This document shows, one piece after another, positions 5,356 through 63,180 of a stretch of 64,000 nt of DNA (its first letter is position 1; each line of letters starts with the position of its first letter). The stretch lies in IMG/VR virus record IMGVR_UViG_3300033145_003233, positions 1 through 64,000 of that record, one strand, 5' to 3'. The translations under genes and the position numbers were made by a program. The notes under the pieces are model-generated. The model ran no database searches. It saw only the letters and a list, made by a program, of their open reading frames with translations, and was not told the DNA's origin.

Positions 5356-5592
5356 TTATTGCCAATTTATACCAAGATCCATTACTACTTGCCTGATAGT
5401 TCTGGGATCAGTATCACCCCTATTATTGCCAAGAGGAACAGCAACACTTCTTCCACTAGGACCAACCCATATTTCATGAGATCCCTTCCCAGGTCTAACA
5501 AATTTAGCTCCTAGGCTCTTTAATTTTTTAATAACCTTTCTAATATTATAAACAGGAAGGCCTGCATAAAGATATTTTTTATACCAGTTCAT
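5356..5592 (-). CDS. hicA: HicA/YcfA-family mRNA interferase-like protein with MNWYKK leader
   Basis: KKLKSLGAKFVRPGKGSHEIWVGPSGRSVAVP matches the HicA GKGSH signature; no hicB nearby. Confidence 0.8.
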   Translation of the reverse strand: MNWYKKYLYAGLPVYNIRKVIKKLKSLGAKFVRPGKGSHEIWVGPSGRSVAVPLGNNRGDTDPRTIRQVVMDLGINWQ

Positions 5593-5595
5593 ATT

Positions 5596-5814
5596 CTAAG
5601 CCATAGAAGGTGTTAATAACTCTGTATTTTGCCATTTTTTATTTTCAGGAGTGCCAAAATTCATAAATCTCTCTATTAATTCTTTTTGCACTTCACTAGG
5701 ATGGGGCCTTCTTCCCAACTTCTTTTCTAATTGCCTAGTAACTTCTTTCCAAGTTCCATAGGAGAAATCAGCCCAATCAGCAGTTTTTATTATTATTCTA
5801 CTATACCAATTCAT
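5596..5814 (-). CDS. Hypothetical protein with MNWY leader
   Basis: MNWYSRIIIKTA start; in operon with hicA. Confidence 0.75.
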   Translation of the reverse strand: MNWYSRIIIKTADWADFSYGTWKEVTRQLEKKLGRRPHPSEVQKELIERFMNFGTPENKKWQNTELLTPSMA

Positions 5815-5865
5815 ATAATAATAATATTTCTACATTTTTTGACTTTTTCCTTTTTTTTTGGACAT

Positions 5866-5898
5866 AAAAAATAGCAGGACTATTACTAGTCCTGCTAT
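5866..5898 (-). terminator. Intrinsic terminator after the vWA gene
   Basis: Perfect 12-bp stem ATAGCAGGACTA/TAGTCCTGCTAT, 4-nt loop, T-run. Confidence 0.8.
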
Positions 5899-5947
5899 TC
5901 GGCCTACTGCACAACCCGTTTCCGAGTTCGAATCCCGCGTGCGAATT

Positions 5948-6700: not shown

Positions 6701-6701
6701 G

Positions 6702-8025: not shown

Positions 8026-8652
8026 CTAAATAGTTGTTCCTTGAGGAACCTCATCAGGAAATGTGTGATTGTCAATGATTTGCTTATATTTGTTATAAAC
8101 ATTAAAAGCTCTTTCGCTGCTTTCACCTCCTATCCTTCTAGAATTATGATTCAACATAGCAATAGCTTTATCTCTAGTCGAACAATTTAACAACATCCCC
8201 TCAAAACCTCCCATATCTTCAATCCTTTGTTTCATCTTTATAGAATGTTCTTGAACTAATTCTGGATGGTCTATAAATTTCTTTCGAGCAGCTTCTGATC
8301 GCCCTCTCCATTGATCTAATAAATTTAATCTCTCTAAAGCTTTAAACACTGTTGTAAGATTAGTTCCATATTGTTTAGTTATCTGTTGAGCAGTCATGCC
8401 TTTTCCCCTAGGAGGTAAAAGATAAAGACTTGCAAGATATTCATCCTTTTTTCTCCTGTATTCTACAAGATCCCTCCATTGATACTTCTTGTTTAATCTT
8501 TCGATAGTATGACTATTTACTCCAAACATCTTCGCTATACTTAAAAAAGACTTGCCTTGATTTACTAATCTCTCCATTTCTGCCAATTCTTTACTACTCC
8601 ATCCTCTTGGAGCAGCAAATGCTATCTTTAATTGCTTTTTATACCAATTCAT
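8026..8652 (-). CDS. Double HTH protein with MNWYKK leader
   Basis: SFLSIAKMFGVNSHTIERL and MTAQQITKQYGTNLTTVFKAL HTH-like segments. Confidence 0.7.
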   Translation of the reverse strand: MNWYKKQLKIAFAAPRGWSSKELAEMERLVNQGKSFLSIAKMFGVNSHTIERLNKKYQWRDLVEYRRKKDEYLASLYLLPPRGKGMTAQQITKQYGTNLTTVFKALERLNLLDQWRGRSEAARKKFIDHPELVQEHSIKMKQRIEDMGGFEGMLLNCSTRDKAIAMLNHNSRRIGGESSERAFNVYNKYKQIIDNHTFPDEVPQGTTI

Positions 8653-9022
8653 AATTTTTTTTAATATAATTTAATATATAATACTGAGGAAAATTCGGAA
8701 ACATTCTCCAATATTTACTTATTAATTTCATATTCACTTCTTTCTCTTTGGATTTTATAAAATCTATAACATGATCTATCCTATGATCATTTTCGCTTCT
8801 ATCCTCTACCTCAGGATATAAAATTGATGCCTTCTCTTGATAACTCATCTCATCAGGAGGCCTACCAAAATCCTTAGCTTTATAGTCCATATAATCTTCT
8901 TTCACAAATGGAGGATCATCACTATGAAAATAATCATATAATTGCTGATGAGTTTCAGGCATGCGCCTTTTCTTCTCTACTGACCATTCTTGAGATTCGA
9001 TAATTCGATTATACCAATTCAT
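8639..9022 (-). CDS. Hypothetical protein with MNWY leader (start reassigned to 9022)
   Basis: MNWYNRIIESQ start matches the leader family. Confidence 0.7.
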   Translation of the reverse strand: MNWYNRIIESQEWSVEKKRRMPETHQQLYDYFHSDDPPFVKEDYMDYKAKDFGRPPDEMSYQEKASILYPEVEDRSENDHRIDHVIDFIKSKEKEVNMKLISKYWRMFPNFPQYYILNYIKKNYELV

Positions 9023-9064
9023 ACTAATATAATTCACCAATTTTTATCAAATTCCTGCAATGGT

Positions 9065-9346
9065 TTATTTTATGGGTATCAACCCATGCTTACTGATATG
9101 CTCTCTATTATCTTCTATGTATTTTTCTAACTCTTGATCAGTTTGATAGATGCCAGGATCATTTTGAAAGTCTGATTTATTCTCAGACATATATTTAAGA
9201 ACGAAAACATAACTACAAATTTCACATGACAAAACTCTTAAAAACTTCCTCTTTTGACATTCCTTATCATCTACTACTCCATCAAAATGCTTGATATGCT
9301 CATCTATACTTCTATCCATCTCTTCCCACATTTCTTCCAGACCCAT
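9065..9346 (-). CDS. Hypothetical protein
   Basis: Start sits directly after a junction repeat carrying a GGGAG SD. Confidence 0.7.
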   Translation of the reverse strand: MGLEEMWEEMDRSIDEHIKHFDGVVDDKECQKRKFLRVLSCEICSYVFVLKYMSENKSDFQNDPGIYQTDQELEKYIEDNREHISKHGLIPIK

Positions 9347-9368: not shown

Positions 9369-9782
9369 TTAATCTAAAATGTTCTTAACTGCTATCACCT
9401 CATCTTTATATCGGTCTTCATATGTTCCAATCATATGTTCCATAAATTCATAAACTAATCCCATAAAACGATGGGTTTTTTCAAATTTATCTACAATGCT
9501 ATTGGATGGGAAGGCCTCTACCCAATCACAAGGATATGTTGTCTCGTCAGTTAACTTATATACTGTTATTGTATACATAGACTGCTGGAATTGTAAAAAA
9601 TCACTTTTAGTGATAAAAGGAAAAACCTTTATAGCTAAAAAAGCGTCAACCTCTTCTTCCTCAACCCCATCTGGATATTCTAATGAAGCAGCTATATCCA
9701 TCCCTCCTCTTCCAAAAATATATATTAATTCTATTTTTTTACCAACTAATCTTGAATAATATTTACCTATTTCTAATTTCAT
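9369..9782 (-). CDS. Hypothetical protein
   Basis: Start coupled (TAATG) to the homing endonuclease stop within the junction repeat. Confidence 0.7.
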   Translation of the reverse strand: MKLEIGKYYSRLVGKKIELIYIFGRGGMDIAASLEYPDGVEEEEVDAFLAIKVFPFITKSDFLQFQQSMYTITVYKLTDETTYPCDWVEAFPSNSIVDKFEKTHRFMGLVYEFMEHMIGTYEDRYKDEVIAVKNILD

Positions 9783-10549
9783 TAGTATAACTCTCCCATC
9801 TTAATTAACTCTTCTGCTCTCTTTATATGTATCGGTAAAAACCTAGGACGGCCACGATCACTTAATCGATAGGTCTTAATCTTGCCAATCTTTACAAGAT
9901 GACTGAGACGATTGTAAGAAACTCCTAACTCCTTGCTAACTTCTTTCATTCTCTTACTCTCAAATCTCCAACTAGGAAGATCGAATTTATAGTCGTAACA
10001 TTTGACTGGACTAGTTCTACCTATGTAGTTGAAAAAGGCAGGGATGCCACGAGCTTTGATAAAGACTCTGTTACAGTCATCTCTATGAGCTTTTATTCCC
10101 ACTTTTCTAATTTTCTCTGCTAAAAATTCAACCTCTTCCGGCAAAAAACCATCTGTTGCAAAACGGACCATTATTCTTTTGCCCTTATCGGGTTGAGTAA
10201 CTGACCCATCCCCTAAATACCACATCATAACTGAAGTAGGCGTAATTTCCACATCCTTAGGAACAGATTTATATCTTTTACCATCTTTATATCTATACCA
10301 TCTCAAACACTGCTTAAAGAAATAAGAATGATACATCGTTCTTCCTGCAAAAACATATCCTTGCTTCATATTCGCAGAATTATATTTTGATACAGAAGCA
10401 TTATAATCCTTGAAAGGACTCATCAGATACTCACAGAACTCCTTATACTGCAAACTACAAGTAGCTCTAGCTACATCTCTTTTTAATCTTTTATCAACAG
10501 ATAAACAGCCATCTCCTAATAAAAAACCATCTATATATTCATTACTCAT
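9782..10549 (-). mobile_element. Free-standing LAGLIDADG homing endonuclease with C-terminal HTH
   Basis: Two motifs YIDGFLLGDG and MWYLGDGS, plus FATDGF; directly downstream of the capsid gene terminator. Confidence 0.85.
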
Positions 10550-10647: not shown

Positions 10648-11520
10648 TTAAGATGCATTGGCATCCGTCATATTAATCCTGCTGATAGCATAGTTATTTA
10701 CCACTACGATACCAACTTCCTCGTATATGACCCAGCCGAGCCTTAATTTCTTTGGATCGTCAGCAGGCAGAACTGTGATGTCCTGTCTGATTGGAAAAGC
10801 CCCTACTGTTTCAGGGCTAGCAACGATAAGAACTGTCGTGCTGCTCATTCTTGAAGATACGTGAATATCGGCTGTCCACAAGTGACCATATAGGCCAGTT
10901 GTTATAATTTCACGCTGAGTTGCTTCATCAAAGAAGTCCTTACCAAATGTACGAATGCTAGCATATTGGAAAGCATGCGTAACTATTTTAGCGGCAACAA
11001 GGTCATGCTGCTCTATCTGCTTAAAAGCCTCATTCAAAGCTGCAACAGTCAGAGTTCCATAGTTTGTAATGGTCTGAGCTGCTGTGCAGGCAGTCAATAA
11101 AGCGTTAAAGATATTGCTATCCTCTTCTTTTTGTATAGCTTCTTTAGCTTTAATCTGGGCACGGTCTACAATGTAGAACCTTCTTGCCTTGATCTCACTA
11201 AGTCTTACTGTTGGGTTAGCGGCGATCTCGAATGTAGGTACGAGAACCTCTTCACCCTCTTGAATCTGATCAGGTACAGCACCTCTACGAGATACTACCC
11301 ATGCTATTGCAGCAACGTCTCTCTCATAACGAGCAAGAGCGCCCTGTGGTAGTTCATCAACCATGAGAAGTTTTCTTCCAACTGCTTGATATTCCAACGC
11401 CCTACGAATAGGTTCTACCATTGCTTGAGCAAGGGCAGTTCTGCCTTCATCTGTTTCCAGAGCCTGAGCAATGACCATCTCTTTCTCTGAATCTGTTAAA
11501 CCATTTTTATCAAAAGCCAT
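10648..11520 (-). CDS. Major capsid protein (HK97 fold, compact ~290 aa)
   Basis: ALAQAMVEPIRRALEYQAVGRKLLMVDELPQG and GWVIYEEVG motifs recalled from phage G-like capsid proteins; strong SD; last gene of protease-decoration-MCP order; own terminator. Confidence 0.85.
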   Translation of the reverse strand: MAFDKNGLTDSEKEMVIAQALETDEGRTALAQAMVEPIRRALEYQAVGRKLLMVDELPQGALARYERDVAAIAWVVSRRGAVPDQIQEGEEVLVPTFEIAANPTVRLSEIKARRFYIVDRAQIKAKEAIQKEEDSNIFNALLTACTAAQTITNYGTLTVAALNEAFKQIEQHDLVAAKIVTHAFQYASIRTFGKDFFDEATQREIITTGLYGHLWTADIHVSSRMSSTTVLIVASPETVGAFPIRQDITVLPADDPKKLRLGWVIYEEVGIVVVNNYAISRINMTDANAS

Positions 11521-12199: not shown

Positions 12200-15100
12200 T
12201 TACTTTCCGTAAGTTTTTCTCAATTGAGTTAAGGTATTATCATCAGCTTCCTGATTCTGTTTCCCTAAGGTGAACATAGATGACAACTTACTACTTAACT
12301 CATCCTGATTATTTCTTACGCTACTTGCCTCATTTATTTGAACGGATTGAGACAATTTTCCGTCTGAAACAGTGTTGAGTCCTTTTTCGCCTGCAAAAAT
12401 GGCTTTCTCAAAATCTTTAATTTGTTCAGCCTTATAGGATTTTAATTCATCTATTTTCATTTGTAATTCTGAAGCTTCAATTCTTTTAGTTTGAAGCATT
12501 CTTCCTGCTACCCTATAAGCCTCGGACTCCGAATCGCTTTTAGCGATTACCGTACCTTTATCTTTTGTAGTTTTTTCACTATCTAACTCTTCCTTACCCT
12601 GTTGGGCATTACCCGTAAACACTTCAGGGTGATCTTTAGGAGAGTCAGGTTTTGAACCTATTGTTTCACTTTCATGCCCCATCATTCCACTATCGCTTTT
12701 AATATCGGATTCATTAATTTCTTCTGCTTTAAATTTTTCTTCTTTTCCGATTGTGCTATCACCTGAAAACGGTTGGATATCTTTATCTTTAGCGACTGGT
12801 TCTTTTGGAGCTAATTTCTTTGCAATTCTTTCTGCCAAACTTGAAATTCCGTCTTTTGAGGAACCGAATCCTCTCATATGGTAAAGGTCTTTATCAACAG
12901 AAGCTAATTCTGTTTTGCCTTGACCTTGATCTCCACCAGTAAATCTTGAATCACCACCACTTAATCCTACTTCCTTCTCATGACCCATCGTACCATCGTC
13001 TGATGGGATAACTGGTAGAGGCTTATCCTGTGGATTTAAGTCAGAAGGCTCTTGACCCATTGTTGCATTATCTCTTGGTACGCTTGGTTTTCCTGCTGAA
13101 GGAATAGTCTCGCCCTCATGACCCATCTTGCCGCCTTCAGGTCCTTCTGTATATTGGCCTATATCTTTTGAGTCTTGGGCTGTTTCCTGAGAGATTTCTT
13201 TCTCTCCAGCTTGCTTATTTAAAACATTAATAACACTAGATAAATCCATCATAGGTTTACCCACTTTTCCAATTGAATTATTAGCAACTAAATCTTCTTT
13301 AGGATCTTTTTCTGCCCCTGCCGTAACAGGTCTTCCATCAACTTTAATCTCTACATTCGATGTTTGTTGTGGAATTCCTTTATTATTTTGCATATCATTT
13401 TGCATATCATTTTCAAATGGGGCTACTCCTGGAGTTGCGGGTTTCATATTTCCGCCGCCCATTGGTTGATCTTGAAGATTCATTGAACCAGGATCGACTG
13501 CTTTCATTTCTCCTCCACCCATAGGATCAGCAGGTTTCATTTCTCCCCCGCCCATTCCAGGCATAGATGGCTTAGTCTCATCTAATTCTCCTGGAGCTAT
13601 TGACTCATCAATACCTTCTGCCATTGGATCTCCCATTGGATCTCCCATTGGATCTCCTTCGATACCTTCTGCCATTGGATCTCCCTCAATACCCTCTTCT
13701 CCTATACCTCCACCTTCAGCTACTTCTATAGCCTGTCCAAGTTGTTCTACTATTTCTGATGGAAGTTCCAGAGTCACTGTCCCTCCTATATCTCCACCAC
13801 CTTCTTCTGCAAACGGATCAATTTCGTCGCCCATTCCTTCTTCTTCTACAGGAGCATCACTAACAATATCTTCTCCTGCCATCTCATCTGCTAAGAAATC
13901 TTCTCCATCAGCAACAGCTATTTTCAAAGAAGCACAAATTTCTGCTGACTGTCTTAACCCATGACCTGAACGAACCTGATGAGTGATACAATCTTCATCC
14001 CCATCAGTATCAGACCAACTATCTGCTAACTTTACAGATATATTAGATGTATAAATATCTGCCTTCTTTAATCTATTACATACAGACTCAGCAAGTGGCT
14101 TGCCTTCATCTGGACCACTTAAACAAAGGGCATTCTGACCAAATCTTCGTGAAAGTTTTTCTATACAAGATTCTATTGGGAAGCTATCTCCATAACCACC
14201 ATATGCTAATTTATAATCATCAATAACAGAACCTTCTTTACTTGCAGTCTTAATTGATTTTAATTTTCCTGCCTGTTTTAATTTAAGAATAGTATCTACT
14301 TGATCTTTAAGCTCTAACTTATCAAAATCACCTATCTTCATATCCATACTTGAAAGAGCCTTAACAAATCTTTGCTTTGCCCTATTACATGATGGGCAAA
14401 TGGCATTAGCTACCTTTGGTTCCCATTCCCACTGCCCATACACTTGCTTACCATCTTTTGAAACCATATAAGATACTTTATATTTCGTTCCTGTATCTAA
14501 ACAGATATAAGAACCTTCCCCCACCTTAACTGTATTAGGTTTTCCTGTTGCGGGGCTAATCGAACCTATTTTTATATCATTAGAAGAGGCTTTCTTTACC
14601 ACTTCTGGAGTTAATTTCATAACTGTAGCGAATTTAGGAATTCTCCAATTATTTACAGAAGCGGCTGATGGAATTTCTCCCATTTCGGCCTCTTGTCCCA
14701 TTCCCATTTCAGGTTCTGTTGGCATCTCAAAACCTTCTCCTTCAAAACCTTCCTCTGCTGCTCCTAATTCTTCTTCTTCGCTTGGGGTTGTCCCCTGCCA
14801 TTTTGTGACATTGACTTCTACTTTATATGTCATTTCCGAAGAACAATTATTACATTTTCCTTTTCCACCTATAATATCAACATCATCACTTCCACAAGCA
14901 GGGCAAATAGACCCAGGAGGAAGTGGCTCAAGAGTATCTTCTAATCCGCCTTCTTCTCCGAATCCACCTTCTTCGCTAAGATTTTCCATTGGAGGTGTTT
15001 CCATAGCCGGTGCTTGTGGCATACTAGCTCCAGCTCCTGGGCCTTGACCCATTCCACCTTGACCACCCATTTCTCCGCCCATCATTTGAGCTTTCTTTTG

Positions 15101-17806
15101 GATTTCTGTTTTAGCAGCAGATACTTTAATATCTTTTTCACTAGACTGACAAGCTTCCATTCCTCCGCCGCCTGCTGGTGCTCCGCCGCCATATCCCATA
15201 TCCTTAGTTTCCTCTTCTCCGTTTAAGTCGGCATCAATATCTTCTACAGGGCCTTCGATAACATCTCCAATATCATCCGGGCATATCTCTTCCTCTGCCC
15301 CAGCACCATCTTGAATATCAATAATAAGACCACCATCTCCAGAAACTTCCACCTTAATAACAGCGGCTGCTACCGATTCATCGTCAATCATTTCTTGTGC
15401 AAACTTTTTAACTCCAGCAACAAAAGCTTCCTTGTCAGTAATAGGAACTCCTATATCTTCCATGGTAGCTTTAATTTGGTATCTTCCATCTTCAGGCTTA
15501 TCAAGAGCTTTAATAGCAGAATTAAGAGCATCTGCTTTAGTAATAAAATCTCCCTGTACCAAACTATTTAACTTACTTTTTGCTAAAGCATCAACTTTAT
15601 CCATAGTAGTTATATCATTAACTATATGGTTAATAGTATCAAAGAGATCTTCTGCCTTCATACCTGTTTGAGCATTATCTGCCGTTGAAAGAACCAAAGC
15701 ATCTACAGTAGATACACTATTTTGAGAAGCAGTTTTATTAAAATAAGCTGCATTAGCAGCTATCATATTTCTATTCTCTTTCTTTTGAGGTAGAGAATTA
15801 ATAATAGAAAGAAAAGCAACCTTCGTTTTCATGCTGGCATTATCACTAATAAGAGAAGAAATCTTCTTAACTTCTTCTGGAGACTTGCGATATTTAGCAA
15901 TAACATCGGCCACTATGTTTGTAGCAGTCTTAACAAGAGACAAAGAGTAATCCTTATTTGCCCATCGTTTCAAGCCATCTGTCATAGAAATATTTCTTAG
16001 CTGATCTTCTGTAATGGTTTCTAAATTACCTATAAACTTATGCTTAGTAAGAAGTTCTCTAATTTGAGCTTGTGTAATATATTCGGTATAATCTTCTGCT
16101 AAATCTCCAGCTATATCTCTGCTAAAATCATCCCATTGTTTTTCAGTAATAACATCAGGATACTCATTAAAGTGAATAACAGCATCGCCTAATGCACTTT
16201 CGGTTTTCAACTGATCTTCTGTAATGGTTTCGTATGTACCTTTGCGAACCTGTGGGCTTTCGCTAGTCGTATCATTAGATCTTTCCGACCCACCAACCTG
16301 TTCTTTGCTTTCGGTAATACCTTCATACACTTCTCCCGTCCTAGGATGAAGCTGTTCTTCTTCTTTCATAAGTTGTTTCTCTGTTATTACTTCCAGATTA
16401 TCAGCACCGGCTGCTGTTTTTATATTCTTATCATTAGTAGCCATTTTTGCTCCTATATCTAATTGATTATTAATATTTTTATTTAACCTATTATTTAAAT
16501 CACACATACTCTGAACTAGAGAATTGATCTTATTACTTAACTTTTCATTTATTTCGGAAAAATCCTCTTTATTTTTTGAAGATTTTTTAGGCATAGTCAG
16601 ACTTCCAAGCCCTCCCAGGTCAGAAGTTTGAGCACCAGGAGCTTCTCCTCCTCCACCTTGTGGTGGCATTTGTTGTGGCATTACTGGGTCAGGGAATTGT
16701 TCTGTAGGAATAGGAGATTCACTATCGGCTGTTATTTCGGGAGAAGGTAATGCCCCATAACCCATTTCAACTAGTTCATCAAAGATACCTTGGACATCAG
16801 CCATAGCTTTTACTAAATCGCTAACATATTCCATAGAAACATTTTCTTTTTGCTGTAGCATACTTTTTACAACATTTTCCATTTCATTCATGCTACTTTT
16901 AAGGGAATCTAACTCTTTTACTCCTCCCAACTTAGCAAGAATTTTACTATCATCAGTATCAAGATATGACTCTTTAAGAAGCCTATTAACATTTTTTGAA
17001 AGCGATGCTACTTTCTTCTCAAGATTTGGAACATTAAGAACACACCTAACCCCACAAATATCACAAGCAGGATTAACTACAAAACTATTTTCTATAAATT
17101 TTAAACCATAATTGTGCTCAAAAATCGCTTGTTCTGCATGTTTAAGCATTTCAGGATTATCTGAGGAGCTTCCGCACAAGGGGCATTTTTCTTCTTTATC
17201 TGTAGGGCTATTATGATAAGCGCATCTTATATCTCCACTATACTTTCTATTTTTCCTATTAGAGACATGAGAGCAATAGTCCTCTGCTGTATTAGCTTTA
17301 TTATGACAAACAGAACAAAGACTTGATTCTACTGAGCATCCCATTGATGTCCCTGTAATATATCCTTCTTCAAGACCTCTTGCCAAACGTGGATAGGCAA
17401 CTTTATCTACCCTACCAATAATATAAATTCCACCTTCTTTTTTATCGTACCACGAATGAACACATTCTCCCCTTGCTTTTTCTACATCATCATTTTGATG
17501 ATTAGTAAACAAGGGAACTCCCACAAATGACTCTGTAGCAGTTTTAAGTTCTTTCTCGCTAAAAGAATCTCCATTATCATTTGGTTCATCTTTTTTAATA
17601 GCAAAGATTTTTATATATAAATGATCTGGATGTTCTTTAGTAGCTTCTTTAAGATCAAATCCACCCAAATCTTCACCCTCTATATCAACAGAAGCTGTTT
17701 TTATTTGATTGGGCAAATTATAAATATCCCATCCTTCTCCTTCTGGCCTGTTTAATGCCTTAATAGGACATTTATAAGAAAAAGTTGCTCTTTTATACAT
17801 TGCCAT
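12200..17806 (-). CDS. Prohead maturation protease fused to a very large scaffold/core region (1868 aa)
   Basis: N-terminal PNDNGDSF, LFTNHQ and GTSMG (His/Ser pair of HK97/assemblin-type proteases); several CxxC ribbons; acidic Gly/Met-rich linkers; ITExQ repeats. Confidence 0.8.
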   Translation of the reverse strand: MAMYKRATFSYKCPIKALNRPEGEGWDIYNLPNQIKTASVDIEGEDLGGFDLKEATKEHPDHLYIKIFAIKKDEPNDNGDSFSEKELKTATESFVGVPLFTNHQNDDVEKARGECVHSWYDKKEGGIYIIGRVDKVAYPRLARGLEEGYITGTSMGCSVESSLCSVCHNKANTAEDYCSHVSNRKNRKYSGDIRCAYHNSPTDKEEKCPLCGSSSDNPEMLKHAEQAIFEHNYGLKFIENSFVVNPACDICGVRCVLNVPNLEKKVASLSKNVNRLLKESYLDTDDSKILAKLGGVKELDSLKSSMNEMENVVKSMLQQKENVSMEYVSDLVKAMADVQGIFDELVEMGYGALPSPEITADSESPIPTEQFPDPVMPQQMPPQGGGGEAPGAQTSDLGGLGSLTMPKKSSKNKEDFSEINEKLSNKINSLVQSMCDLNNRLNKNINNQLDIGAKMATNDKNIKTAAGADNLEVITEKQLMKEEEQLHPRTGEVYEGITESKEQVGGSERSNDTTSESPQVRKGTYETITEDQLKTESALGDAVIHFNEYPDVITEKQWDDFSRDIAGDLAEDYTEYITQAQIRELLTKHKFIGNLETITEDQLRNISMTDGLKRWANKDYSLSLVKTATNIVADVIAKYRKSPEEVKKISSLISDNASMKTKVAFLSIINSLPQKKENRNMIAANAAYFNKTASQNSVSTVDALVLSTADNAQTGMKAEDLFDTINHIVNDITTMDKVDALAKSKLNSLVQGDFITKADALNSAIKALDKPEDGRYQIKATMEDIGVPITDKEAFVAGVKKFAQEMIDDESVAAAVIKVEVSGDGGLIIDIQDGAGAEEEICPDDIGDVIEGPVEDIDADLNGEEETKDMGYGGGAPAGGGGMEACQSSEKDIKVSAAKTEIQKKAQMMGGEMGGQGGMGQGPGAGASMPQAPAMETPPMENLSEEGGFGEEGGLEDTLEPLPPGSICPACGSDDVDIIGGKGKCNNCSSEMTYKVEVNVTKWQGTTPSEEEELGAAEEGFEGEGFEMPTEPEMGMGQEAEMGEIPSAASVNNWRIPKFATVMKLTPEVVKKASSNDIKIGSISPATGKPNTVKVGEGSYICLDTGTKYKVSYMVSKDGKQVYGQWEWEPKVANAICPSCNRAKQRFVKALSSMDMKIGDFDKLELKDQVDTILKLKQAGKLKSIKTASKEGSVIDDYKLAYGGYGDSFPIESCIEKLSRRFGQNALCLSGPDEGKPLAESVCNRLKKADIYTSNISVKLADSWSDTDGDEDCITHQVRSGHGLRQSAEICASLKIAVADGEDFLADEMAGEDIVSDAPVEEEGMGDEIDPFAEEGGGDIGGTVTLELPSEIVEQLGQAIEVAEGGGIGEEGIEGDPMAEGIEGDPMGDPMGDPMAEGIDESIAPGELDETKPSMPGMGGGEMKPADPMGGGEMKAVDPGSMNLQDQPMGGGNMKPATPGVAPFENDMQNDMQNNKGIPQQTSNVEIKVDGRPVTAGAEKDPKEDLVANNSIGKVGKPMMDLSSVINVLNKQAGEKEISQETAQDSKDIGQYTEGPEGGKMGHEGETIPSAGKPSVPRDNATMGQEPSDLNPQDKPLPVIPSDDGTMGHEKEVGLSGGDSRFTGGDQGQGKTELASVDKDLYHMRGFGSSKDGISSLAERIAKKLAPKEPVAKDKDIQPFSGDSTIGKEEKFKAEEINESDIKSDSGMMGHESETIGSKPDSPKDHPEVFTGNAQQGKEELDSEKTTKDKGTVIAKSDSESEAYRVAGRMLQTKRIEASELQMKIDELKSYKAEQIKDFEKAIFAGEKGLNTVSDGKLSQSVQINEASSVRNNQDELSSKLSSMFTLGKQNQEADDNTLTQLRKTYGK

Positions 17807-45523: not shown

Positions 45524-45531
45524 CAATTTTC

Positions 45532-45560: not shown

Positions 45561-45641
45561 TCTAGAATTAATTTTCCAGACAACTGTTTTTTTGTAGCAA
45601 AAGTATAATTAAACCTTGTTTTTTCTTTGATTGGAGTTTAA

Positions 45642-52219: not shown

Positions 52220-52479
52220 TGGCAAAATTAAGCCACAAAGAAATAGTAGAAAAGATTCAACAATGGCAAAACTGCCCATTTGTTCATGAATTAACATGTA
52301 GAGATAGTAATTGTGATGGTATTTTAATCCCTAAGATTTCTGATGCAACTCATCTTTCTGTATACTTAAAATGTCCTAAATGCTCTTATACCCAAAGTCA
52401 TGTCCCAGAAATGGTATTTCATACAAATTTTGAAGCAATAGAAAAACTTTTAGATACTCTTAAAGGAGAAGCCGAATGA
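52219..52479 (+). CDS. Zn-finger microprotein
   Basis: HELTCRDSNC...CPKC. Confidence 0.7.
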   Translation: MAKLSHKEIVEKIQQWQNCPFVHELTCRDSNCDGILIPKISDATHLSVYLKCPKCSYTQSHVPEMVFHTNFEAIEKLLDTLKGEAE

Positions 52480-55427: not shown

Positions 55428-57880
55428 CTAGATTATAAGTTCTTCTACTAGTGTCCCATTGACAACTATTTGAAGACTTCCTTCTTCCGCTATATATTCT
55501 ATATAAACATCTTCATCTTCTCCCTCAATAGAAGAACTGCTGGAGCTTACAGAGCTGCTTGAGCTTACGGAACTACTTGAGCTACTCACAGATGAGCTAC
55601 TTGAACTTACCGAGCTACTTGAACTTGAAACTGATGAACTACTAACAGATGAACTGCTCGAACTTGAAACAGACGAACTGCTTACTAAACTACTACTTGA
55701 GCTTATAGAACTAGAGCTTACAGAACTAGAGCTTACAGAACTAGAGCTACTGCTAACCGAAGAACTACTAACTGAACTACTGCTTGAGCTTATAGAACTA
55801 GAGCTTACAGAACTAGAGCTACTACTAACCGAAGAACTACTAACGGAAGAACTGCTTGAACTTATTGAGCTACTAGAGCTGCTATCTTCTGCTACACTAC
55901 TACTACTTGAACTTACTGAACTACTTGAACTTGAAACCGAAGAACTACTAACAGATGAGCTGCTTGAGCTTACTGAACTACTTGAGCTTGAAACTGATGA
56001 GCTACTAACAGATGAGCTGCTTGAACTTACTGAACTACTTGAGCTTGAAACTGATGAGCTACTAACAGATGAGCTACTTGAACTTACTGAACTACTTGAG
56101 CTTGAAACTGATGAGCTACTAACAGATGAGCTACTTGAGCTTACTGAACTACTTGAGCTTGAAACTGATGAGCTACTAACAGATGAGCTACTTGAGCTTA
56201 CTGAACTACTTGAGCTTGAAACTGAAGAACTACTAACTGAACTACTGCTAGAGCTTACAGAACTAGAGCTTACAGAACTAGAGCTGCTACTAACCGAAGA
56301 ACTACTAACTGAAGAACTGCTTGAGCTTATTGAACTACTAGAGCTGCTATCTTCTGCTGCGCTACTGACCGAAGAACTACTTACTGAACTGCTGCTAGAA
56401 CTTACCGAACTACTTAAGCTTGAAACTGACGAACTACTTACTGAACTGCTGCTAGAACTTACCGAACTACTTGAGCTTGAAACTGATGAGCTACTTACTG
56501 AACTAGAGCTTGAACTTATAGAGCTAGAACTTACAGAACTAGAGCTTACAGAACTAGAGCTGCTACTAACCGAAGAACTACTAACTGAAGAACTGCTTGA
56601 GCTTATTGAACTACTAGAGCTGCTATCTTCTGCTGCGCTACTGAAGAACTGCTTACTGAACTACTTGAACTACTAATTGATGAGCTACTTACAGAGCTGC
56701 TAGAACTTGAAACTGACGAACTGCTTACTGAACTACTAGAACTTGAAACTGACGAACTGCTTACTGACGAACTGCTTGAGCTTACTGAACTACTTGAACT
56801 TGAAACTGACGAACTGCTTACTGAGCTACTAGAACTTGAAACTGACGAGCTGCTTACCGAACTACTGCTTGAACTTACTGAGCTACTTGAGCTTGAGACT
56901 GATGAACTGCTAACAGATGAACTGCTAGAGCTTACTGAACTACTTGAGCTTGAGACTGATGAACTACTTATAGAAGAACTTGAGCTTGAGACTGATGAAC
57001 TACTTACAGAAGAACTTGAGCTTGAGACTGATGAACTACTTACAGAAGAACTTGAGCTTGAGACTGATGAACTACTTATAGAAGAACTTGAGCTTGAGAC
57101 TGATGAACTACTTACTGATGAACTGCTAGAACTTACTGAACTACTGCTGACAGATGAGCTACTAGAACTTACTGAACTACTAGAGCTTGAAATTGATGAA
57201 CTGCTTGATGATCCCTCCGGCAATATTTCAAGAAGATGACCACAATTTTCGTCACTAAAACCACCAGCCCAGTCAATTATTATTGAATCAGGTGCCCCGC
57301 CTATTTTATCTCCGACATAGAAACTTTCATCTTGAGAAGTAGAACCTCCTCCAGTCTCACCATTAGCGATTTGAAAAAATCCAGCACCTCCTGTAGTAAC
57401 AGGAGATCCATCTGCTCCATAAGCACAAGCCACTGCAAATAATGTACTTCCTGTTGTTGCCGAGCCAGATGGCAGAACAGTTGTTGTTGTAAGACTATTA
57501 TTTACATCTTCACTGAGAAAATTAGTAGCATCGGCTACTGAGCTATTAATCGTTCCAAGATAATTAACTGCCGTGGAATGAGTATGGGCATCAGTAGTTT
57601 GTGTAAAAGTAATATTAGCGATTCCGGGAGAGGGATTAACTCGCCCATAAGTAGTGATTTTTTTATCTCCGCCACTAGAAGTGTCATTTGTAGTAGCATC
57701 AATAATAGAAAGAGTCTCAGTTGTATTCCCTGCAGGTGCAATACTAATACTCTCATTAGCATCCTGAGTAACAGTGACAACAAGGAGAGTCGTCCCTTCA
57801 TCAACCTCATGCACATAAGTTATCTCACTTGCATTATCGGTCAATGTATATGTTGTATATTGTCCTCTAGTTATTGCCAT
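55428..57880 (-). CDS. Giant poly-Ser virion/adhesin-like protein interrupted by one frameshift near 56642 (about 818 codons if restored)
   Basis: ORF 56603-57880 drifts out of frame. The Ser frame continues without stops in the segments checked to ...SIEGEDEDVYIEYIAEEGSLQIVVNGTLVEELII* at 55428. Confidence 0.75.
55530..57211 (-). repeat. About 560-codon low-complexity (S4-7-V/I)n tract with three S-A/V-A-E-D punctuation units
   Basis: Hierarchical gagctact/gaactact repeats; AED units near 55885, 56350 and 56628. Confidence 0.92.
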
Positions 57881-58870: not shown

Positions 58871-58899
58871 CAGGATTTAGTAAAATATCTCCAAATATA
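58871..58899 (+). promoter_or_regulatory. Putative phage-sigma promoter CAGGATTT-N12-CCAAATAT, giving a near-leaderless mRNA
   Basis: Matches the RAGGWTTT class; ATG 7 nt after the -10 box; no SD. Confidence 0.5.
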
Positions 58900-58905: not shown

Positions 58906-59280
58906 ATGAATTGGTATAAAAGATCACAATTATCTACTGTAGATGTTATAGAAGATCATAATAAGGATTATTTAGAGATAGGACATGATTATTATCGTGG
59001 CAAAAACCCCCCTCCTAATAAACCTAATTATCTTTGGATGTTTCATAATGGAGAAATATTATATGAAGAAGAAACCTCTGAACGGTCGAACCATGGAATG
59101 GTAGAAGAATGGAAAATTCTAAGCGGAGATATATTTAGTGGTAGATTTGAATCTGCTACAGGTTCGTTAAGTATTAGTAGACCTCAAACTGGGGTGAGAG
59201 AATATCTTCCCATTCCTAAATCTATACTGTATAAATTATATCAAAAATTTCCTGGAATAAAACAAGTTTATATTTTTTAA
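58906..59280 (+). CDS. MNWY-leader protein; paralog of the C-terminal domain of the next gene
   Basis: IGH, NYLW, GRFES.TG.LS..RP and KLYQKF.GIKQ shared. Confidence 0.85.
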   Translation: MNWYKRSQLSTVDVIEDHNKDYLEIGHDYYRGKNPPPNKPNYLWMFHNGEILYEEETSERSNHGMVEEWKILSGDIFSGRFESATGSLSISRPQTGVREYLPIPKSILYKLYQKFPGIKQVYIF

Positions 59281-59284: not shown

Positions 59285-61426
59285 ATGAGTTGGTATAAAA
59301 AAGCACAATTAAGTAAAAAACTTCTTAAAAACATTGAGAAGAAGAAGCAAATTTCTCTTCAAAAAGGATGGACTCCTGAAGAGGTAAATTGGGTTGCGGA
59401 TATATCAACCAAACTTAATGACCCATCTTATTTTCTATGGTTATTGGAGCAAACCAGAAATGGCAGTGCTAACATACAAACTAGAGAAGATGATAAAAAA
59501 ATATTTGAAGCATTGGAGAAATTTGATGAACTTAAAAAGAAAAAACTTATTTCAGAAGATATTAATAAATTCAAAACATTTGCTGATTTATATGAAGTAG
59601 TTAAAGACTTTTTAGAACAACAGGGTCGATCTTATATGCAAGATGTCGGATCAATGGGAGGGGCAAAACTTCTTTATAACGAGAATAATATATCTGTCAT
59701 TGAAGTAAGAAACTCTAAAGCTGGTCAAGAATTATTCCGAGATTCAGGGTGGTGTGTAAAAGAGCCTGAACAATTTGACCATTATGGCCCTCCTTTCTAT
59801 CTATTTAGAAAATACAACGAGAACTATGCCTTGTTCCATGCAAAATATGGAGACTTTAAAGACGTAGCAGATAAATCAATGAGAATGAGAGAAACAATTC
59901 CATTGCTTCCATCTTTTAATTTTTTATTTCAATCAGAAATAATTGATCCAAAGAAGCAGAGATTAGGAGATATAAGAGTTATTCCTGAAATTATGCAACA
60001 AAAAGAAACAACAAATAAACTTTGCGAAATTGGAGATATGCAAGCTTTAGACAATGTTATAAGTAGCGACTTAGAATATTCCAATCTTATTGAAAAATTT
60101 AATTTAACACCTGAAATAGTAGATTTGGTAAAGAATAACTTTTTAAAAACACGGGGAAAACTGTCAAAACCTGAAGAAATTAATGATTTTTATCACAGTA
60201 TTCCTGTCTATTTAGATCAAGCAGGAATTTTACCGACAGAGCAAGAAAAATCAATTGTTAGTGGTGCTATGGATATTAGTATAGATAGAGATTCTTATGA
60301 GATGCTTGAAAAAGGGTATTTAGATCTCAACTACCCTTCAAAAATAGTTAGAAACCTAGAGACTATAAATAATTTATACAGGAAATTACACAAATCACTA
60401 AAAACCGACAAAATAAAAAGAGAAGCTGTTCGATGGAATAAAATGATAATAAAAAGCGCCCCCGAAGCTATTGAATTATGGGCTATGCTTCCTGAGGAAT
60501 TAAAAAGAGAATGCCTTCCAGAAGCTCAAAAAGGGGCGGCAGATGAAATTCGCCGTGATCCTAAACTATATTATGATCCTGAACAACAAAAACAAATCCC
60601 ACCGGAATTAATAACAGAAAATCTTAAAAATGCTTCTTATAGAGGAGTTTTACAACTACTTCCAAAAAAACCTTATCTATCATGGGAACAAAAGATTCCT
60701 CCAGAATTTCGCACTGACGACTTTGACAATATCCTTTATGAAGCCCGCATTAAAGGAGTTCCCACTAAATTTTCTTCATGGGAAGATATGGACGAGATAT
60801 TTAAAACAAAAGAGTTATGGAATAAATTTTACTCTTTAGCTTTAAATAGTATTCAAAACAGTTATAGCCCTTCAATTATTAGTCGCATACCAGATGAGTT
60901 TAAAACAGAAGAATTGATTGCTCTTTATTACCAACATCATTCTGAACAAGCACAAGATTATCTTCCTGCTAAGATTATGCAGCAACAAAAAGAATTATTA
61001 GAACAACAACTTCAAAATAAAGTAAACACCCCTGAGCAAGTAGATCCTCTACAATCCGAACACAAAACCAATTGGTATAAAAAATCTCAATTATCAACTA
61101 TAGACGTGCCGGAAAATCACAATAGAACCTACATGGATATAGGGCATGAGGGGCTTGATGATGAAAATCCTAATTATTTATGGGTTTTATATGATGGAGA
61201 AATATTATCTGAACAAGAGGACCCTGGTCTTCCACAACATCCTGATTTGTGGCCTAACATAAATTTTGGAAAAGTATTTTGTGGGAGATTTGAATCTTCT
61301 ACAGGAGCGCTAAGCGTTCATAGACCGCTTGATAATGCCATGGTGAGGAATAGACCTGTCCCAAAATCAATACTATTTAAATTATATCAAAAATTTCAAG
61401 GAATAAAACAAATTTACACCTTTTAA
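59285..61426 (+). CDS. MSWYKKAQ-leader multidomain protein (PcfJ-like WC domain, helical repeats, fused internal NWYKK module)
   Basis: SGWCV motif; IP.EF.T repeats; internal TNWYKKSQ at about 61067. Confidence 0.8.
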   Translation: MSWYKKAQLSKKLLKNIEKKKQISLQKGWTPEEVNWVADISTKLNDPSYFLWLLEQTRNGSANIQTREDDKKIFEALEKFDELKKKKLISEDINKFKTFADLYEVVKDFLEQQGRSYMQDVGSMGGAKLLYNENNISVIEVRNSKAGQELFRDSGWCVKEPEQFDHYGPPFYLFRKYNENYALFHAKYGDFKDVADKSMRMRETIPLLPSFNFLFQSEIIDPKKQRLGDIRVIPEIMQQKETTNKLCEIGDMQALDNVISSDLEYSNLIEKFNLTPEIVDLVKNNFLKTRGKLSKPEEINDFYHSIPVYLDQAGILPTEQEKSIVSGAMDISIDRDSYEMLEKGYLDLNYPSKIVRNLETINNLYRKLHKSLKTDKIKREAVRWNKMIIKSAPEAIELWAMLPEELKRECLPEAQKGAADEIRRDPKLYYDPEQQKQIPPELITENLKNASYRGVLQLLPKKPYLSWEQKIPPEFRTDDFDNILYEARIKGVPTKFSSWEDMDEIFKTKELWNKFYSLALNSIQNSYSPSIISRIPDEFKTEELIALYYQHHSEQAQDYLPAKIMQQQKELLEQQLQNKVNTPEQVDPLQSEHKTNWYKKSQLSTIDVPENHNRTYMDIGHEGLDDENPNYLWVLYDGEILSEQEDPGLPQHPDLWPNINFGKVFCGRFESSTGALSVHRPLDNAMVRNRPVPKSILFKLYQKFQGIKQIYTF

Positions 61427-61431
61427 AAATT

Positions 61432-61974
61432 ATGAATTGGTACAAAAAAGCAAATAGCTATATAGCTTATTATGGAACTCCTACAGATTTTCAAAATTTC
61501 TCTTATGAATTTCTTGGAACTAACGGAACTGCCGAGGGCTTTGGTTTTTATTTTACTAGTAATAAAAGTATTGCTGAAGGATATGCTGATGGAGGGATAT
61601 TAAAAAAAGCTATTCTTGATATTAAAAAACCCCTAAATTTTGTAAGGCTTAGTATCTCTAAGCAAAACCTAGCTGTGTTTTTAAGAGCATTAGATCCTAC
61701 AGGTGAAGGATATCTGTCAAATTGGGGGGAATCTAGCTACGAAGGATATCAACAAGTTTTAAATACAGCTATTGAAGGAGAGTTTTCAGGGTCAGATAAT
61801 GATGTAGATTTAATATCAGGAATCATACAAGCTCAAGGAGGGGATGCTGAATCTATATATAAAGTATTAAAACAAACATTGGGATATGATGGAATTGTTG
61901 TTAATCGTCCATCATGGGGAGGAAATCAAGTTATATATGTAGTATTTGACAACTCCCAGATTAGGGAGATATAA
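61432..61974 (+). CDS. ADP-ribosyltransferase-like (ART-PolyVal type) protein with MNWYKK leader
   Basis: AY(Y/H)GT..DF..F...G.GFYFT.....A.GY; YDGIVV; YVVFDNSQI. Confidence 0.7.
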   Translation: MNWYKKANSYIAYYGTPTDFQNFSYEFLGTNGTAEGFGFYFTSNKSIAEGYADGGILKKAILDIKKPLNFVRLSISKQNLAVFLRALDPTGEGYLSNWGESSYEGYQQVLNTAIEGEFSGSDNDVDLISGIIQAQGGDAESIYKVLKQTLGYDGIVVNRPSWGGNQVIYVVFDNSQIREI

Positions 61975-62508
61975 ATGAATTGGTATAAAAAAACAGTTGA
62001 AAGTGAAAAGAATCATAGTATAATAGTTGCTATGAAAAAAGAATTTGTAATAATGCGTGGTCTTCCTGGCTCAGGTAAAAGCACCCTAGCTAAGCAATTA
62101 GCAGGAACAAATGGTCAAATATTCTCTGCTGATGATTTCTTTATGGACACAGATGGAAACTATAATTTTGACCCTTCTAAATTAGGACAAGCTCATGAGT
62201 GGAATTATAATAGAATCAGAGAGGCTATCAGCGCAGGGGCCTCCCCTGTTATCCTGGACAATACAAATGTTGCACAATGGGAGTTAAGGAAATTAAAACC
62301 TCTCATAGAACATGCTACATTAAGAGGATACAAGTCAAGAATAGAAGAACCTCAAACTCCTTGGGCAATGGACCCAGAAGAACTTGCGAAAAGAAACACT
62401 CACGGAGTTCCTCAAGAAGCTATTGAAGGAAAACTTAGAAAATGGGTTAAAGATCCCACAATAGAAGATATCCAAAGCAATTTTGGCATTCCTCAATCTC
62501 CCCAATAA
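61975..62508 (+). CDS. P-loop (N4BP2/AAA_33-like) polynucleotide kinase with MNWYKK leader
   Basis: IMRGLPGSGKSTLA, SADDFF, AHEWN, ILDNTN, RNTHGVP. Confidence 0.85.
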   Translation: MNWYKKTVESEKNHSIIVAMKKEFVIMRGLPGSGKSTLAKQLAGTNGQIFSADDFFMDTDGNYNFDPSKLGQAHEWNYNRIREAISAGASPVILDNTNVAQWELRKLKPLIEHATLRGYKSRIEEPQTPWAMDPEELAKRNTHGVPQEAIEGKLRKWVKDPTIEDIQSNFGIPQSPQ

Positions 62509-62565
62509 AAATGGGGAGAAAACCCTTGCAGGCCTTCCCCCCACAGAGTAGTGGAATCAGGGGGG

Positions 62566-63180
62566 TTATTTACATTTTATCGCGTTAGCAAATAAATCTT
62601 TTATTTTAACTTCTTCCATTTTATACCATCCGGTTGGCATATCATTAAAATATTGATTTATATATTGTTTATAAGAATTGAACCAGTTCTTTCTGTTTTT
62701 TTCTGATGTTTTGTTTATTTTTTTTCGGCTAATTCCAGTCAAATATGTTGCATAGTCTTCTGCTTCTTTGTTTACATTATCAGAATCATTCTTATTGCAG
62801 GAAGCAGGCCCCCAATGAAGCAACTTTCTATCTGAAGAAATGGCCCAACAGTCTACATTATATTTAGACAATTCTAAAAATTTCTTACTAAATTTTATAG
62901 CTTGAGGATCATAACCTTGATTTTCTAAATTCTCGTCAGAACGACTTTCTTTAACTATTACATCATTTATAGCTATTAAGTCGCCAGAATTGAATTGAGT
63001 TTTAACTAAAACATCTATATCTCTAATTCTAAAATCTGAATTATCAATATTCTCAGCATAAGATCCCCAGAGATAAAGATCTTTAACTCCCTTTACTTTT
63101 CTAAAATCTTCTAACGCCCCTGATATGTGGGGCTTTATATCTTTTATCTTAGGCATACACTTTTCGTACCAAGAACTCAA
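62566..63180 (-). CDS. Pol-beta-type nucleotidyltransferase domain protein
   Basis: LYLWGSYA...RDIDVLV (GS plus DxD), third Asp VDCW; MSSWYEK leader variant. Confidence 0.7.
   Translation of the reverse strand: MSSWYEKCMPKIKDIKPHISGALEDFRKVKGVKDLYLWGSYAENIDNSDFRIRDIDVLVKTQFNSGDLIAINDVIVKESRSDENLENQGYDPQAIKFSKKFLELSKYNVDCWAISSDRKLLHWGPASCNKNDSDNVNKEAEDYATYLTGISRKKINKTSEKNRKNWFNSYKQYINQYFNDMPTGWYKMEEVKIKDLFANAIKCK

Follow-up and report, generated by a model that had tools for sequence, protein, structure and literature searches.

A short N-terminal peptide recurs on unrelated proteins of megaphages related to Bacillus phage G and may act as a capsid-targeting and processing tag

In encapsulins, unrelated enzymes are brought into a shell of the HK97 fold by nothing more than a short linear peptide. 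The internal proteins of phage T4 are diverse, fast-evolving accessory and defence proteins, and a capsid-targeting sequence (CTS) is the only part they have in common (PMC3012670). In Staphylococcus phage 80alpha, a short N-terminal motif is present on the capsid protein, on the scaffold, whose N-terminal sequence is essential for assembly, and on some non-homologous phage proteins (PMC5744158). Polyvalent, MuF-linked proteins of phages and conjugative elements have been proposed to be pre-made effectors that are injected (PMC7824862). The giant heads of phiKZ-like phages such as SPN3US are reported to be loaded with many internal proteins, which are trimmed by the prohead protease (PMC5694885, PMC7411985). 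Here, we describe an N-terminal peptide (the tag, or tag A where several are compared) that recurs on otherwise unrelated proteins encoded in the first 64 kb (64,000 nucleotides; the window) of the 547,943-bp IMG/VR record IMGVR_UViG_3300033145_003233. The window has a G+C content of about 33%, its content is that of a phage genome segment, and homology places the source, an uncultivated megaphage, in a large clade related to Bacillus phage G.

In the window, ten open reading frames (ORFs) have an N-terminus of the form M-(x)-[NS]-W-[YF] (Table 1). Seven of them begin with M-N-W-Y and one with M-S-W-Y-K-K, and the remaining two, of the M-x-N-W-F type, belong to the head module; about 12-15% of the window's genes are tagged. 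A first-pass annotation, made from the letters of the DNA alone, had listed these leaders, and every one was found where it had been placed. The leader that it had given for 63180 is indeed present, but it begins with TTG, reads SSWYEK and is a weak variant, so that its membership is doubtful. The motif [NS]W[YF] falls within residues 2-5 of nine ORFs of at least 60 amino acids, where 0.17 would be expected from the rate of the tripeptide at internal positions (Poisson P ~2e-13), and residue-shuffled window ORFs yielded a mean of 0.036 hits and a maximum of one. The bodies that follow the tag are unrelated, as had been stated, and comprise HicA, a helix-turn-helix (HTH)/homing-endonuclease-type DNA-binding domain, an ADP-ribosyltransferase (ART) of the ART-PolyVal family, an AAA_33 kinase and several proteins without a match. 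For the HicA-like protein the match to PF07927 reaches 37.9 bits against a curated cut-off of 27. Tagged proteins are mostly single-domain and 50-270 amino acids long.

Orthologues in relatives preserve the tag. Those of the HTH protein (8026-8652) retain MNWY[KN][KR], and those of the two tagged genes located just downstream of the terminase gene retain M-x-N-W-[FY], with the starts MGNWFKK and MSNWYKT for ORF 32094-32522 and MPNWF and MANWF for ORF 32526-32750. The largest tagged protein of the window (59285-61426) carries an internal copy of the tag, NWYKKSQLSTIDV, and its C-terminal ~118 residues, which this internal copy precedes, are homologous to the complete 124-residue protein encoded at 58906-59280; the ORF is thus regarded as a two-module fusion. 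In a distant orthologue (locus L068) the internal tag is conserved as MNWYKKAQ. A sequence search of the PDB with the 124-residue body yielded nothing useful.

That the conserved entity is a peptide follows from an unbiased set of sequences, namely 1.33 Mb from 80 relatives, surrounding their genes for the major capsid protein (MCP), in which no nucleotides were imposed and 29 distinct M-N-W-[YF] starts were found outside the window. M, N and W are invariant in this set, position 4 is tyrosine or, in two cases, phenylalanine, and positions 5-6 are less constant and may be K, R, N, T or H. Asparagine is encoded by AAT in 15 and by AAC in 14 cases, tyrosine by TAT in 23 and by TAC in 4, and the lysine at position 5 by AAA in 12 and by AAG in 10. 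Exchanges within the tag are conservative (Y/F, K/R, N/S). The first-pass annotation had pointed to fixed synonymous sites as the sign of a translation-initiation or recombination element; instead, synonymous sites vary and the amino acids are kept. Because synonymous positions vary and the DNA upstream of the tags is unrelated from gene to gene, we state that selection acts on the tag peptide. A DNA- or RNA-level element was largely ruled out by codon statistics in a pattern-forced set as well as in the unbiased one.

The modularity of the tag is borne out beyond the window. Forty-four tagged proteins from other IMG/VR contigs carry unrelated Pfam domains, i.e., AAA_33/zeta-toxin-like kinases, 2H/Acb1-like phosphoesterases, GNAT, ART-PolyVal, UvrD helicases, lysozyme/SLT, nucleotidyltransferases of the poly(A)-polymerase type and HTH domains. 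Conversely, Brevibacillus phage Jenst encodes an untagged ART homologue, and one and the same kinase body can follow this tag or either of two others, or have no tag. Among the 119 closest classifiable homologues of the window kinase (43-100% identity), tag A was found on 60, a second tag (tag B, M-K-x-I-x-T-x-x-Y-K-x-A-Q or M-K-I-I-K-T-A) on 13 and a third (tag C, S-F-basic-x-W-L-E-N) on eight, while 17 have no extension, three are fusions with a tag between two domains (among the kinase homologues, P0107 is a two-module fusion with an internal tag) and 18 have other N-termini. On a tree of the kinase bodies, the tag class switches at least 25 times, compared with 35.6 times for shuffled labels, so there is some phylogenetic signal, yet exchange is frequent. 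Where they precede a kinase, tags A and B both contain the core [YW]-K-x-[AS]-Q, which is immediately followed by the first strand of the kinase. In the AlphaFold model of the window kinase, the body is predicted with a pLDDT (predicted local distance difference test score) of ~97 and residues 1-20 with ~50-57; the tag is accordingly modelled as a flexible appendage of the kinase body.

Two further features of the kinase family are recorded here. In a subfamily with long leaders (window kinase, P0003, P0005, P0007, P0008, P0010, P0012 and others), a methionine is conserved directly before the body (...A-M-K-K-E-F...) at the position of the start in untagged homologues; it may be left over from an N-terminal extension or serve as a second start for an untagged isoform. 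The third extension, x-S/T-F-basic-x-W-L-E-N (P0062, P0072, P0078, P0079, P0080, P0088, P0091, P0106), may be another dialect of the tag, from other phages.

When IMG/VR was scanned for the back-translated hexapeptide, at least 119 loci were retrieved, and the matches listed included 48 distinct full-length proteins with the motif at the start of the ORF, which extended the consensus to M-N-W-Y-K-K-[AS]-[QKNT]. A longer pattern gave 14 loci in 596 Gb of bacterial and archaeal genomes, and only about five of these look genuine and lie on short contigs of metagenome-assembled genomes that are possibly phage themselves; in the viral sample the same pattern occurred at least 35 times. The tag is restricted to phages and nearly absent from cellular genomes. 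In the MCP neighbourhoods of the clade, 'NWY' is the commonest N-terminal tripeptide after one orthologous family, and arrays of up to seven consecutive tagged genes lie beside the MCP gene and converge on it (L023/L212). For cultured phages, blastn of a 30-mer against 50,697 phage records gave scattered chance matches only, and tblastn of the 124-residue body found nothing. In the literature searched, neither the tag motif nor the phage G motif described below was found printed in a phage context; the letters appeared only in papers on dengue and plants.

Other N-terminal peptides of the same kind exist in the clade. The window encodes a second tag type (Table 1), M-K-I-[IL]-[KR]-T-A-x-Y, which is found in 16 of 80 related loci on small proteins. 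Elsewhere in the clade, this type forms arrays in a variable region that follows the MCP gene, with four consecutive copies in L159 (12084-14400), and it also occurs in L242 and L251. Phage G itself was inspected over nucleotides 1-50000 of NC_023719.1 (L214). M-N-W-Y is absent from these first 50 kb, and gp5, 9, 10, 13, 17, 20, 38, 56 and 57 share a tag of their own that resembles M-K-R-L-I-K-K-[AS]. The pattern M-(K/S)-(K)-R-[LI]-(x)-K-K-[AS...] has nine N-terminal matches versus one internal match in 14,340 residues. These proteins have nothing else in common; gp5 contains a LysM domain, and gp53, with the related start MKRLVKA, is weakly PARP/ART-like right after the tag. All the tagged phage G genes reside between the gene for the large terminase (TerL) and the region just past the MCP gene, and gp17 and gp20 flank the protease gene. 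Few G-type tags were found near MCP genes of the clade. The dialects can be aligned without gaps as M-x-Φ-Φ-K-[KRT]-[AS] (Φ, hydrophobic), a pattern written after the data had been seen, which matches 2.3% of the ORF starts in the relatives' loci compared with 0.06% of internal methionines. The best explanation appears to be that M-N-W-[YF]-K-[KR]-[AS]-[QKNT] is one of several dialects of this general N-terminal signal in phage-G-like megaphages, and that the protease-scaffold protein, to which we now turn, bears a version of it at its own N-terminus.

The window encodes a very large prohead protease-scaffold protein between portal and MCP. Its first ~250 residues match a PHROG of head-maturation proteases, and an alignment of orthologues reveals a conserved histidine and the serine of a G-T-S-M-G motif. 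For an AlphaFold2 model of the N-terminal domain, which is of moderate confidence, the best fold match in the PDB is T4 gp21 (5jbl, probability 0.96, TM 0.47 on the target); this is also the only match of high probability, and a sequence search of the PDB with the domain gave nothing useful. The other ~1600 residues form an acidic, repetitive region that resembles a scaffold. The protein starts with MAMYKRAT, and across 70 orthologues the N-terminus follows M-[AS]-Φ-x-K-[KRT]-A-[ST]. A position-specific scoring matrix was derived from tag positions 4-9 only, with M-N-W left out, and applied to the N-termini of 2175 other ORFs from the loci of the relatives; protease-scaffold orthologues (MAMYKRATFS, MAMYKKATFS) took the first four ranks and most of the first nine. 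The N-terminus of the MCP, M-A-F-D-K-N-G, conforms to a clade pattern M-[AS]-Φ-x-K-x-small that matches the tag only loosely, unlike that of the protease-scaffold, and we attach little weight to this likeness.

The core of the tag also recurs within the protease-scaffold. With the post hoc pattern Φ-K-[KTR]-A-[STQ], nine matches were found in all window ORFs, six in the protease-scaffold, two in tags and one in a protein of 454 amino acids beside the portal. The 70 orthologues contain 115 such sites versus 6.9 +/- 2.7 after shuffling, an enrichment of about 16-fold, and their density in other ORFs is 7-fold lower. Outside the catalytic core, the most conserved residues of the protease-scaffold are the nearly invariant K5, K36 and A38 (...I-K-T-A-S...) and a K-x-A-G right after the protease domain, all in segments that flank this domain and are left disordered by the model. 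The conserved K-x-A sites are probably recognition or cleavage sites of the maturation protease. The x-K-K-A-small core that tag and protease-scaffold N-terminus share is reminiscent of the conserved basic N-terminus of the bacterial ribosomal protein bL27, which may be coincidence; the bL27 precursor motif is reportedly what the capsid proteins of 80alpha mimic.

The protease-scaffold shows two additional peculiarities. Residues ~490-620 contain five repeats of the type I-T-E-[KDA]-Q-[LI] (six in the L023 orthologue), which may be capsid-binding repeats or gp21-type (I-x-E) cleavage sites. About one third of the aligned orthologues (seen in L138, L142, L144, L146, L147, L150, L151, L156, L163, L164, L174 and L177) have an intein-like insertion right after G-T-S-M-G that starts at a cysteine and in some cases has LAGLIDADG-like GYI blocks; the window copy is uninterrupted.

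With regard to expression, it had been remarked that most tagged genes lack a Shine-Dalgarno (SD) sequence, and this holds for eight of the ten, as compared with about 40% of the other genes. The shortage can be explained by operon layout, with seemingly leaderless first genes and tightly coupled later ones. First tagged genes of operons begin 3-6 nt past a TATA-like box, and their mRNAs are probably leaderless; later tagged genes start 3-5 nt past the previous stop codon or overlap it. The promoter-like element concerned consists of AGGATTT, a spacer of ~17-20 nt and a TATA-like box, and differs from the canonical TTGACA/TATAAT pair present in the divergent region 45460-45641. Across the relatives, it was found upstream of 20% of the genes with tag A, 14% of the MCP genes and 3% of other ORFs, which suggests that tagged genes are co-expressed with head genes. 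The phage sigma-70-family factor encoded in the window (Table 1) could be the reader of these promoters. More generally, the AGGATTT element often ends 3-13 nt ahead of an ATG, and such mRNAs are probably leaderless. A conserved promoter upstream of 59285 and 61432 was considered and rejected, as the similar DNA is the coding 3' end of two homologous domains.

The first-pass annotation had interpreted the leaders as a system for targeting cargo to the capsid. The modular peptide tag as such stands, and the link to the capsid receives indirect support from the likeness to the protease-scaffold N-terminus, the motif enrichment in this protein, the location in head modules and the MCP-type promoter; the cleavage site that would be expected by analogy with T4 did not come to light. 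Our preferred explanation is a tag that serves capsid targeting and processing in analogy to the T4 CTS, and in our judgement its chances of being correct are about even. Tagged proteins would be produced together with head proteins, and the tag would dock on the assembling scaffold/protease core or on the inner shell, so that its carriers would be enclosed in the prohead. The gp21-fold maturation protease may then clip the tag and also the internal copies in fused multi-module proteins, and the enzymes would stay inside the head until they are delivered to the host along with the DNA. The proposed cargo comprises the ADP-ribosyltransferase, kinases, the HicA-type RNase, Acb1-like phosphoesterases, acetyltransferases, helicases and lysozymes. 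The fusions with internal tags (59285-61426, its L068 orthologue and P0107) look like polyproteins or fusions of tagged modules.

Several points weigh against an interpretation as a capsid tag. The tagged set is known here from genes alone, and the clade is uncultured. A share of ~12-15% of the genes would amount to a very large set of cargo, and some tagged proteins (membrane-like ones, HTH proteins or helicases of 1200 amino acids) are less obvious cargo. The similarity between tag and protease-scaffold N-terminus spans only about five residues, the Φ-K-[KTR]-A-[STQ] expression was formulated with the data in view, and the promoter evidence is modest. No consistent T4-type [LI]-x-E cleavage site follows the tags of the window. 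Proteases of the gp21 fold classically cut after glutamate, and the ITE repeats of the scaffold would fit this classical site and thus compete with K-x-A as the cleavage motif. Finally, the N-terminal motif on capsid and scaffold proteins in the 80alpha/Prp system seems to serve processing and folding or assembly rather than packaging (PMC5744158).

Only tentatively would we take the capsid reading further and regard the peptide as a programmable address label of phage-G-like megaphages. In this extended form, 7-8 residues in at least three dialects that co-exist or are specific to a clade (MNWYKKAQ, MKIIKTAKY, MKRLIKKAS and possibly SF+xWLEN) would direct more than 10% of the proteins to the head core, the gp21-fold protease would clip them at K-x-A, and the contents would be injected as an arsenal for takeover and counter-defence. 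Fusions with internal labels would be polyproteins that are cut into effectors, and the label would be carried by ADP-ribosyltransferases, kinases, RNase toxins, anti-CBASS-like phosphoesterases, acetyltransferases, helicases and lysozymes.

The 80alpha precedent leads to an alternative that we consider unlikely, if conceivable, namely that the peptide is a propeptide for processing or folding without packaging. A dedicated phage or host protease or a chaperone would act on it, thereby coordinating maturation or holding toxic enzymes inactive, and the capsid would be uninvolved. Such a role would agree with a motif that is common to the N-termini of the protease-scaffold and, loosely, the MCP, with K-x-A sites in disordered linkers and with internal tag copies at module junctions. 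In addition, the tag of the ART abuts the first conserved strand, so that its removal could activate the enzyme, and the 80alpha motif likewise occurs on non-homologous proteins of related phages (PMC5744158). However, the only protease that was identified is the prohead protease, which is normally active inside proheads, tagged genes cluster in head modules, and the need of dozens of accessory enzymes for such a motif would be left unexplained.

It is rather improbable that the tag is a docking peptide for another hub, be it a host machine such as the ribosome, RNA polymerase or membrane or a compartment made by the phage, at which enzymes gather after normal expression. No candidate for such a hub was identified, and the likeness of the protease-scaffold N-terminus and the motif enrichment in the scaffold would go unexplained, even though the tag is modular and found on enzymes that modify host macromolecules, several dialects could track a co-evolving receptor, and hydrophobic segments follow the tag in some of the proteins.

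Published classes of N-terminal ClpX recognition signals resemble the tag, which is strictly N-terminal, short, flexible and basic-hydrophobic. It could therefore be a degradation signal for host or phage proteases of the ClpXP/Lon type that confers a short, timed life on toxic takeover enzymes; many of the bodies are potentially toxic enzymes, and phage G encodes ClpP/ClpX, which have been reported in particle proteomics. We nevertheless judge this improbable, as the protease-scaffold has the motif both at its N-terminus and internally, a reader of N-terminal ends would have no access to the conserved internal copies at module junctions, the tagged genes reside in late-looking head modules, and the window has no gene for ClpX or ClpP.

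A role at the level of RNA or DNA, either as an enhancer of translation initiation for genes that are SD-less, leaderless or coupled or as a recombination cassette that shuffles bodies, has been largely refuted by the codon data and is very improbable. The scarcity of SD sequences among the tagged genes, first genes that look leaderless and the frequent swapping of tags on the kinase tree would suit it, but synonymous positions vary as the genomic background does, changes are conservative, flanking DNA is unrelated, genes with good SD sequences are tagged as well, and at 61070 the tag lies inside an ORF without a start codon (...K-T-N-W-Y-K-K). A chance pattern, or a paralogous family that has diverged everywhere except at the N-terminus, has nothing beyond the shortness of the motif in its favour and is refuted by the excess in the window, by bodies of different Pfam families and folds and by the occurrence of the same body with and without the tag.

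How does a capsid-targeting tag compare with the systems described at the outset? As in the T4 internal proteins IPI-III and Alt, a short N-terminal peptide is the sole common part of otherwise unrelated proteins, a gp21-fold prohead protease and a scaffold core are present, an ADP-ribosyltransferase is among the tagged proteins, and tagged genes form variable arrays. In contrast to T4, no consistent L/I-x-E site terminates the tag, far more genes are tagged, several dialects and internal copies in fused modules exist, the protease is fused to a giant scaffold, and encapsidation and cleavage are only proposed here, on the basis of gene sequences. By sequence and cleavage-site type the tag is presumably outside the T4 CTS family; homology to the T4 CTS is not expected, because the phage is only distantly related to T4. 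The likeness to 80alpha/Prp consists in a short N-terminal sequence common to the scaffold and other non-homologous proteins. There, the motif, which is common to L27, is read by a host ribosomal-protein protease and confined to structural proteins, whereas here dozens of enzymes are tagged and the motif differs.

Polyvalent proteins have the same repertoire, i.e., ART-PolyVal, zeta-like kinases, GNAT, phosphoesterases for nucleotide signals, helicases and lysozymes. They are single giant polypeptides with a MuF/portal-binding anchor, whereas the megaphage proteins are mostly encoded by separate small genes with tags of their own, and Pfam searches gave no match to the MuF domain on tagged proteins. 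The two-module fusions with internal tags (59285-61426, P0107) look like an intermediate towards polyvalent proteins. In phiKZ-like phages, the propeptides are reported to be longer and dissimilar, with a short cleavage motif at their end and no common heptapeptide at the extreme N-terminus. Encapsulins are similar in that a short peptide on unrelated enzymes goes together with an HK97-fold shell, as proposed here; their peptides are usually C-terminal, bind the shell directly without subsequent proteolysis or DNA packaging and have another sequence. N-terminal targeting or processing tags on phage proteins are thus already known, and what appears to be new is the sequence, the dialects, the coverage of ~12-15% of the genes and the spread across a large clade of uncultivated megaphages.

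Table 1 Features of the 64-kb window
Feature	Position	Strand	Remarks
Tagged protein, MNWYKKY...	5356-5592	-	78 aa; HicA-toxin-like body, PF07927, E 2e-9, residues 18-75
Tagged protein, MNWYSRI...	5596-5814	-	72 aa; no family match
Tagged protein, MNWYKKQLKIA...	8026-8652	-	208 aa; HTH DNA-binding body
Tagged protein, MNWYNRI...	8639-9022	-	127 aa; first gene of a probably leaderless operon
Tagged protein, MSNWFKN...	32094-32522	-	142 aa; charged, low complexity; head module beside TerL
Tagged protein, ANWFKKAQNWFNK...	32526-32750	-	74 aa; start codon GTG, not ATG; (GTG)-A-N-W-F-K-K-A-Q-N-W-F
Tagged protein, MNWYKRSQLSTVDV...	58906-59280	+	124 aa; MNWYKR start; recurrent body, fold not recognised; free-standing in L032, L073
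Tagged protein, MSWYKKAQL...	59285-61426	+	713 aa; two-module fusion
Internal tag (NWYKKSQ)	61070-61090	+	residue ~603 of the 713-aa ORF, at module junction
Tagged ADP-ribosyltransferase, MNWYKKAN...	61432-61974	+	ART-PolyVal, PF18760, E 8e-15; Pfam match from residue 11
Tagged AAA_33/zeta-like kinase, MNWYKKT...	61975-62508	+	
Weak variant, SSWYEK	62566-63180	-	TTG start; membership doubtful
Second tag type, MKRIITKKYA...	17820-18107	-	95 aa; between portal and protease; positional counterpart of phage G gp17
Second tag type, weaker	18549-18965		
Second tag type, MKTIETTKYA...	29537-29818	-	93 aa
Second tag type, weaker, MKIIQSGKY...	30073-30321	-	82 aa
MCP	10648-11520	-	290 aa; 55% identical to phage G gp27, major head protein
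Prohead protease-scaffold	12200-17806	-	1868 aa; between portal and MCP; gp21-like fold, residues ~50-250
Portal	18958-21243		761 aa; 32% identical to phage G portal
TerL	33639-35537		
Promoter-like element	9030-9060	-	AGGAATTT, ~20 nt spacer, TTATATT; ends 3 nt before ATG at 9022
Promoter-like element	58872-58899	+	AGGATTT, 17 nt spacer, TATA; ends 6 nt before ATG at 58906
Further promoter-like elements	18322-18294, 25636-25604, 27579-27552, 33628-33588, 37845-37815, 40118-40091	-	AGGATTT elements ahead of operons starting 18266, 25557, 27538, 33564, 37809, 40055
Sigma-70-family factor	44614-45459	-	
Collagen-like tail fibre	1473-5039		
Ribonucleotide reductase	40143-42593		

The assignment to the phage-G-like group (relatives of Donellivirus) is based on homologous MCP and portal proteins and on a gene order of portal, small genes, protease, decoration protein and MCP as in phage G. 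At least 121 IMG/VR contigs, the longest of 548 kb, encode an MCP that is 70-100% identical to that of the window. Pfam gave no match for the protease-scaffold, the MCP and most head-module proteins of the window, and scans for tRNAs and Rfam families found nothing in it. Other genes of the window code for a dUTPase, an HNH endonuclease, a macro domain, a nicotinate phosphoribosyltransferase (NAPRTase) and an NAD synthase. The portal has a C-terminal extension of ~150 residues, and its residues 585-726 match PHROGs annotated as HNH endonuclease or unknown. Macro domain (43921-44421), NAPRTase (45642-46994) and NAD synthase (52476-53252) are present in one window with the tagged ART and together look like an NAD+/ADP-ribose toolkit, which would replenish NAD+ and remove ADP-ribose alongside the ART.

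A gene for a LAGLIDADG-type endonuclease (9782-10549) abuts the MCP gene and adjoins two adjacent small genes, 9065-9346 and 9369-9782. The 25-nt regions upstream of the latter are nearly identical (...taattaagatgggaga[a/g]ttatacta ATG), which looks like a local duplication of the 5' region. The only long stretch without a called gene, 55533-56594, consists of complex tandem repeats that extend over ~1.1 kb and have periods of 15, 36, 57, 72 and 171 nt; it contains no tRNA and has no Rfam match, and its minus strand holds serine-rich, low-complexity ORF fragments.

If the tag is indeed a capsid label, it would provide a rule for predicting virion-delivered effectors among the hundreds of uncharacterised genes of uncultivated megaphages, whose injected proteome would become readable from sequence. 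It would also account for the way in which very large heads acquire their enzymes, and it would constitute a minimal peptide for loading foreign proteins into large shells of the HK97 type. The cultured phage G, with its own version of the tag, is an immediate experimental system. Should the peptide instead be a degradation or processing motif, its presence on more than 10% of the genes and the switching of dialects on one enzyme family would represent an undescribed layer of proteome organisation in megaphages.

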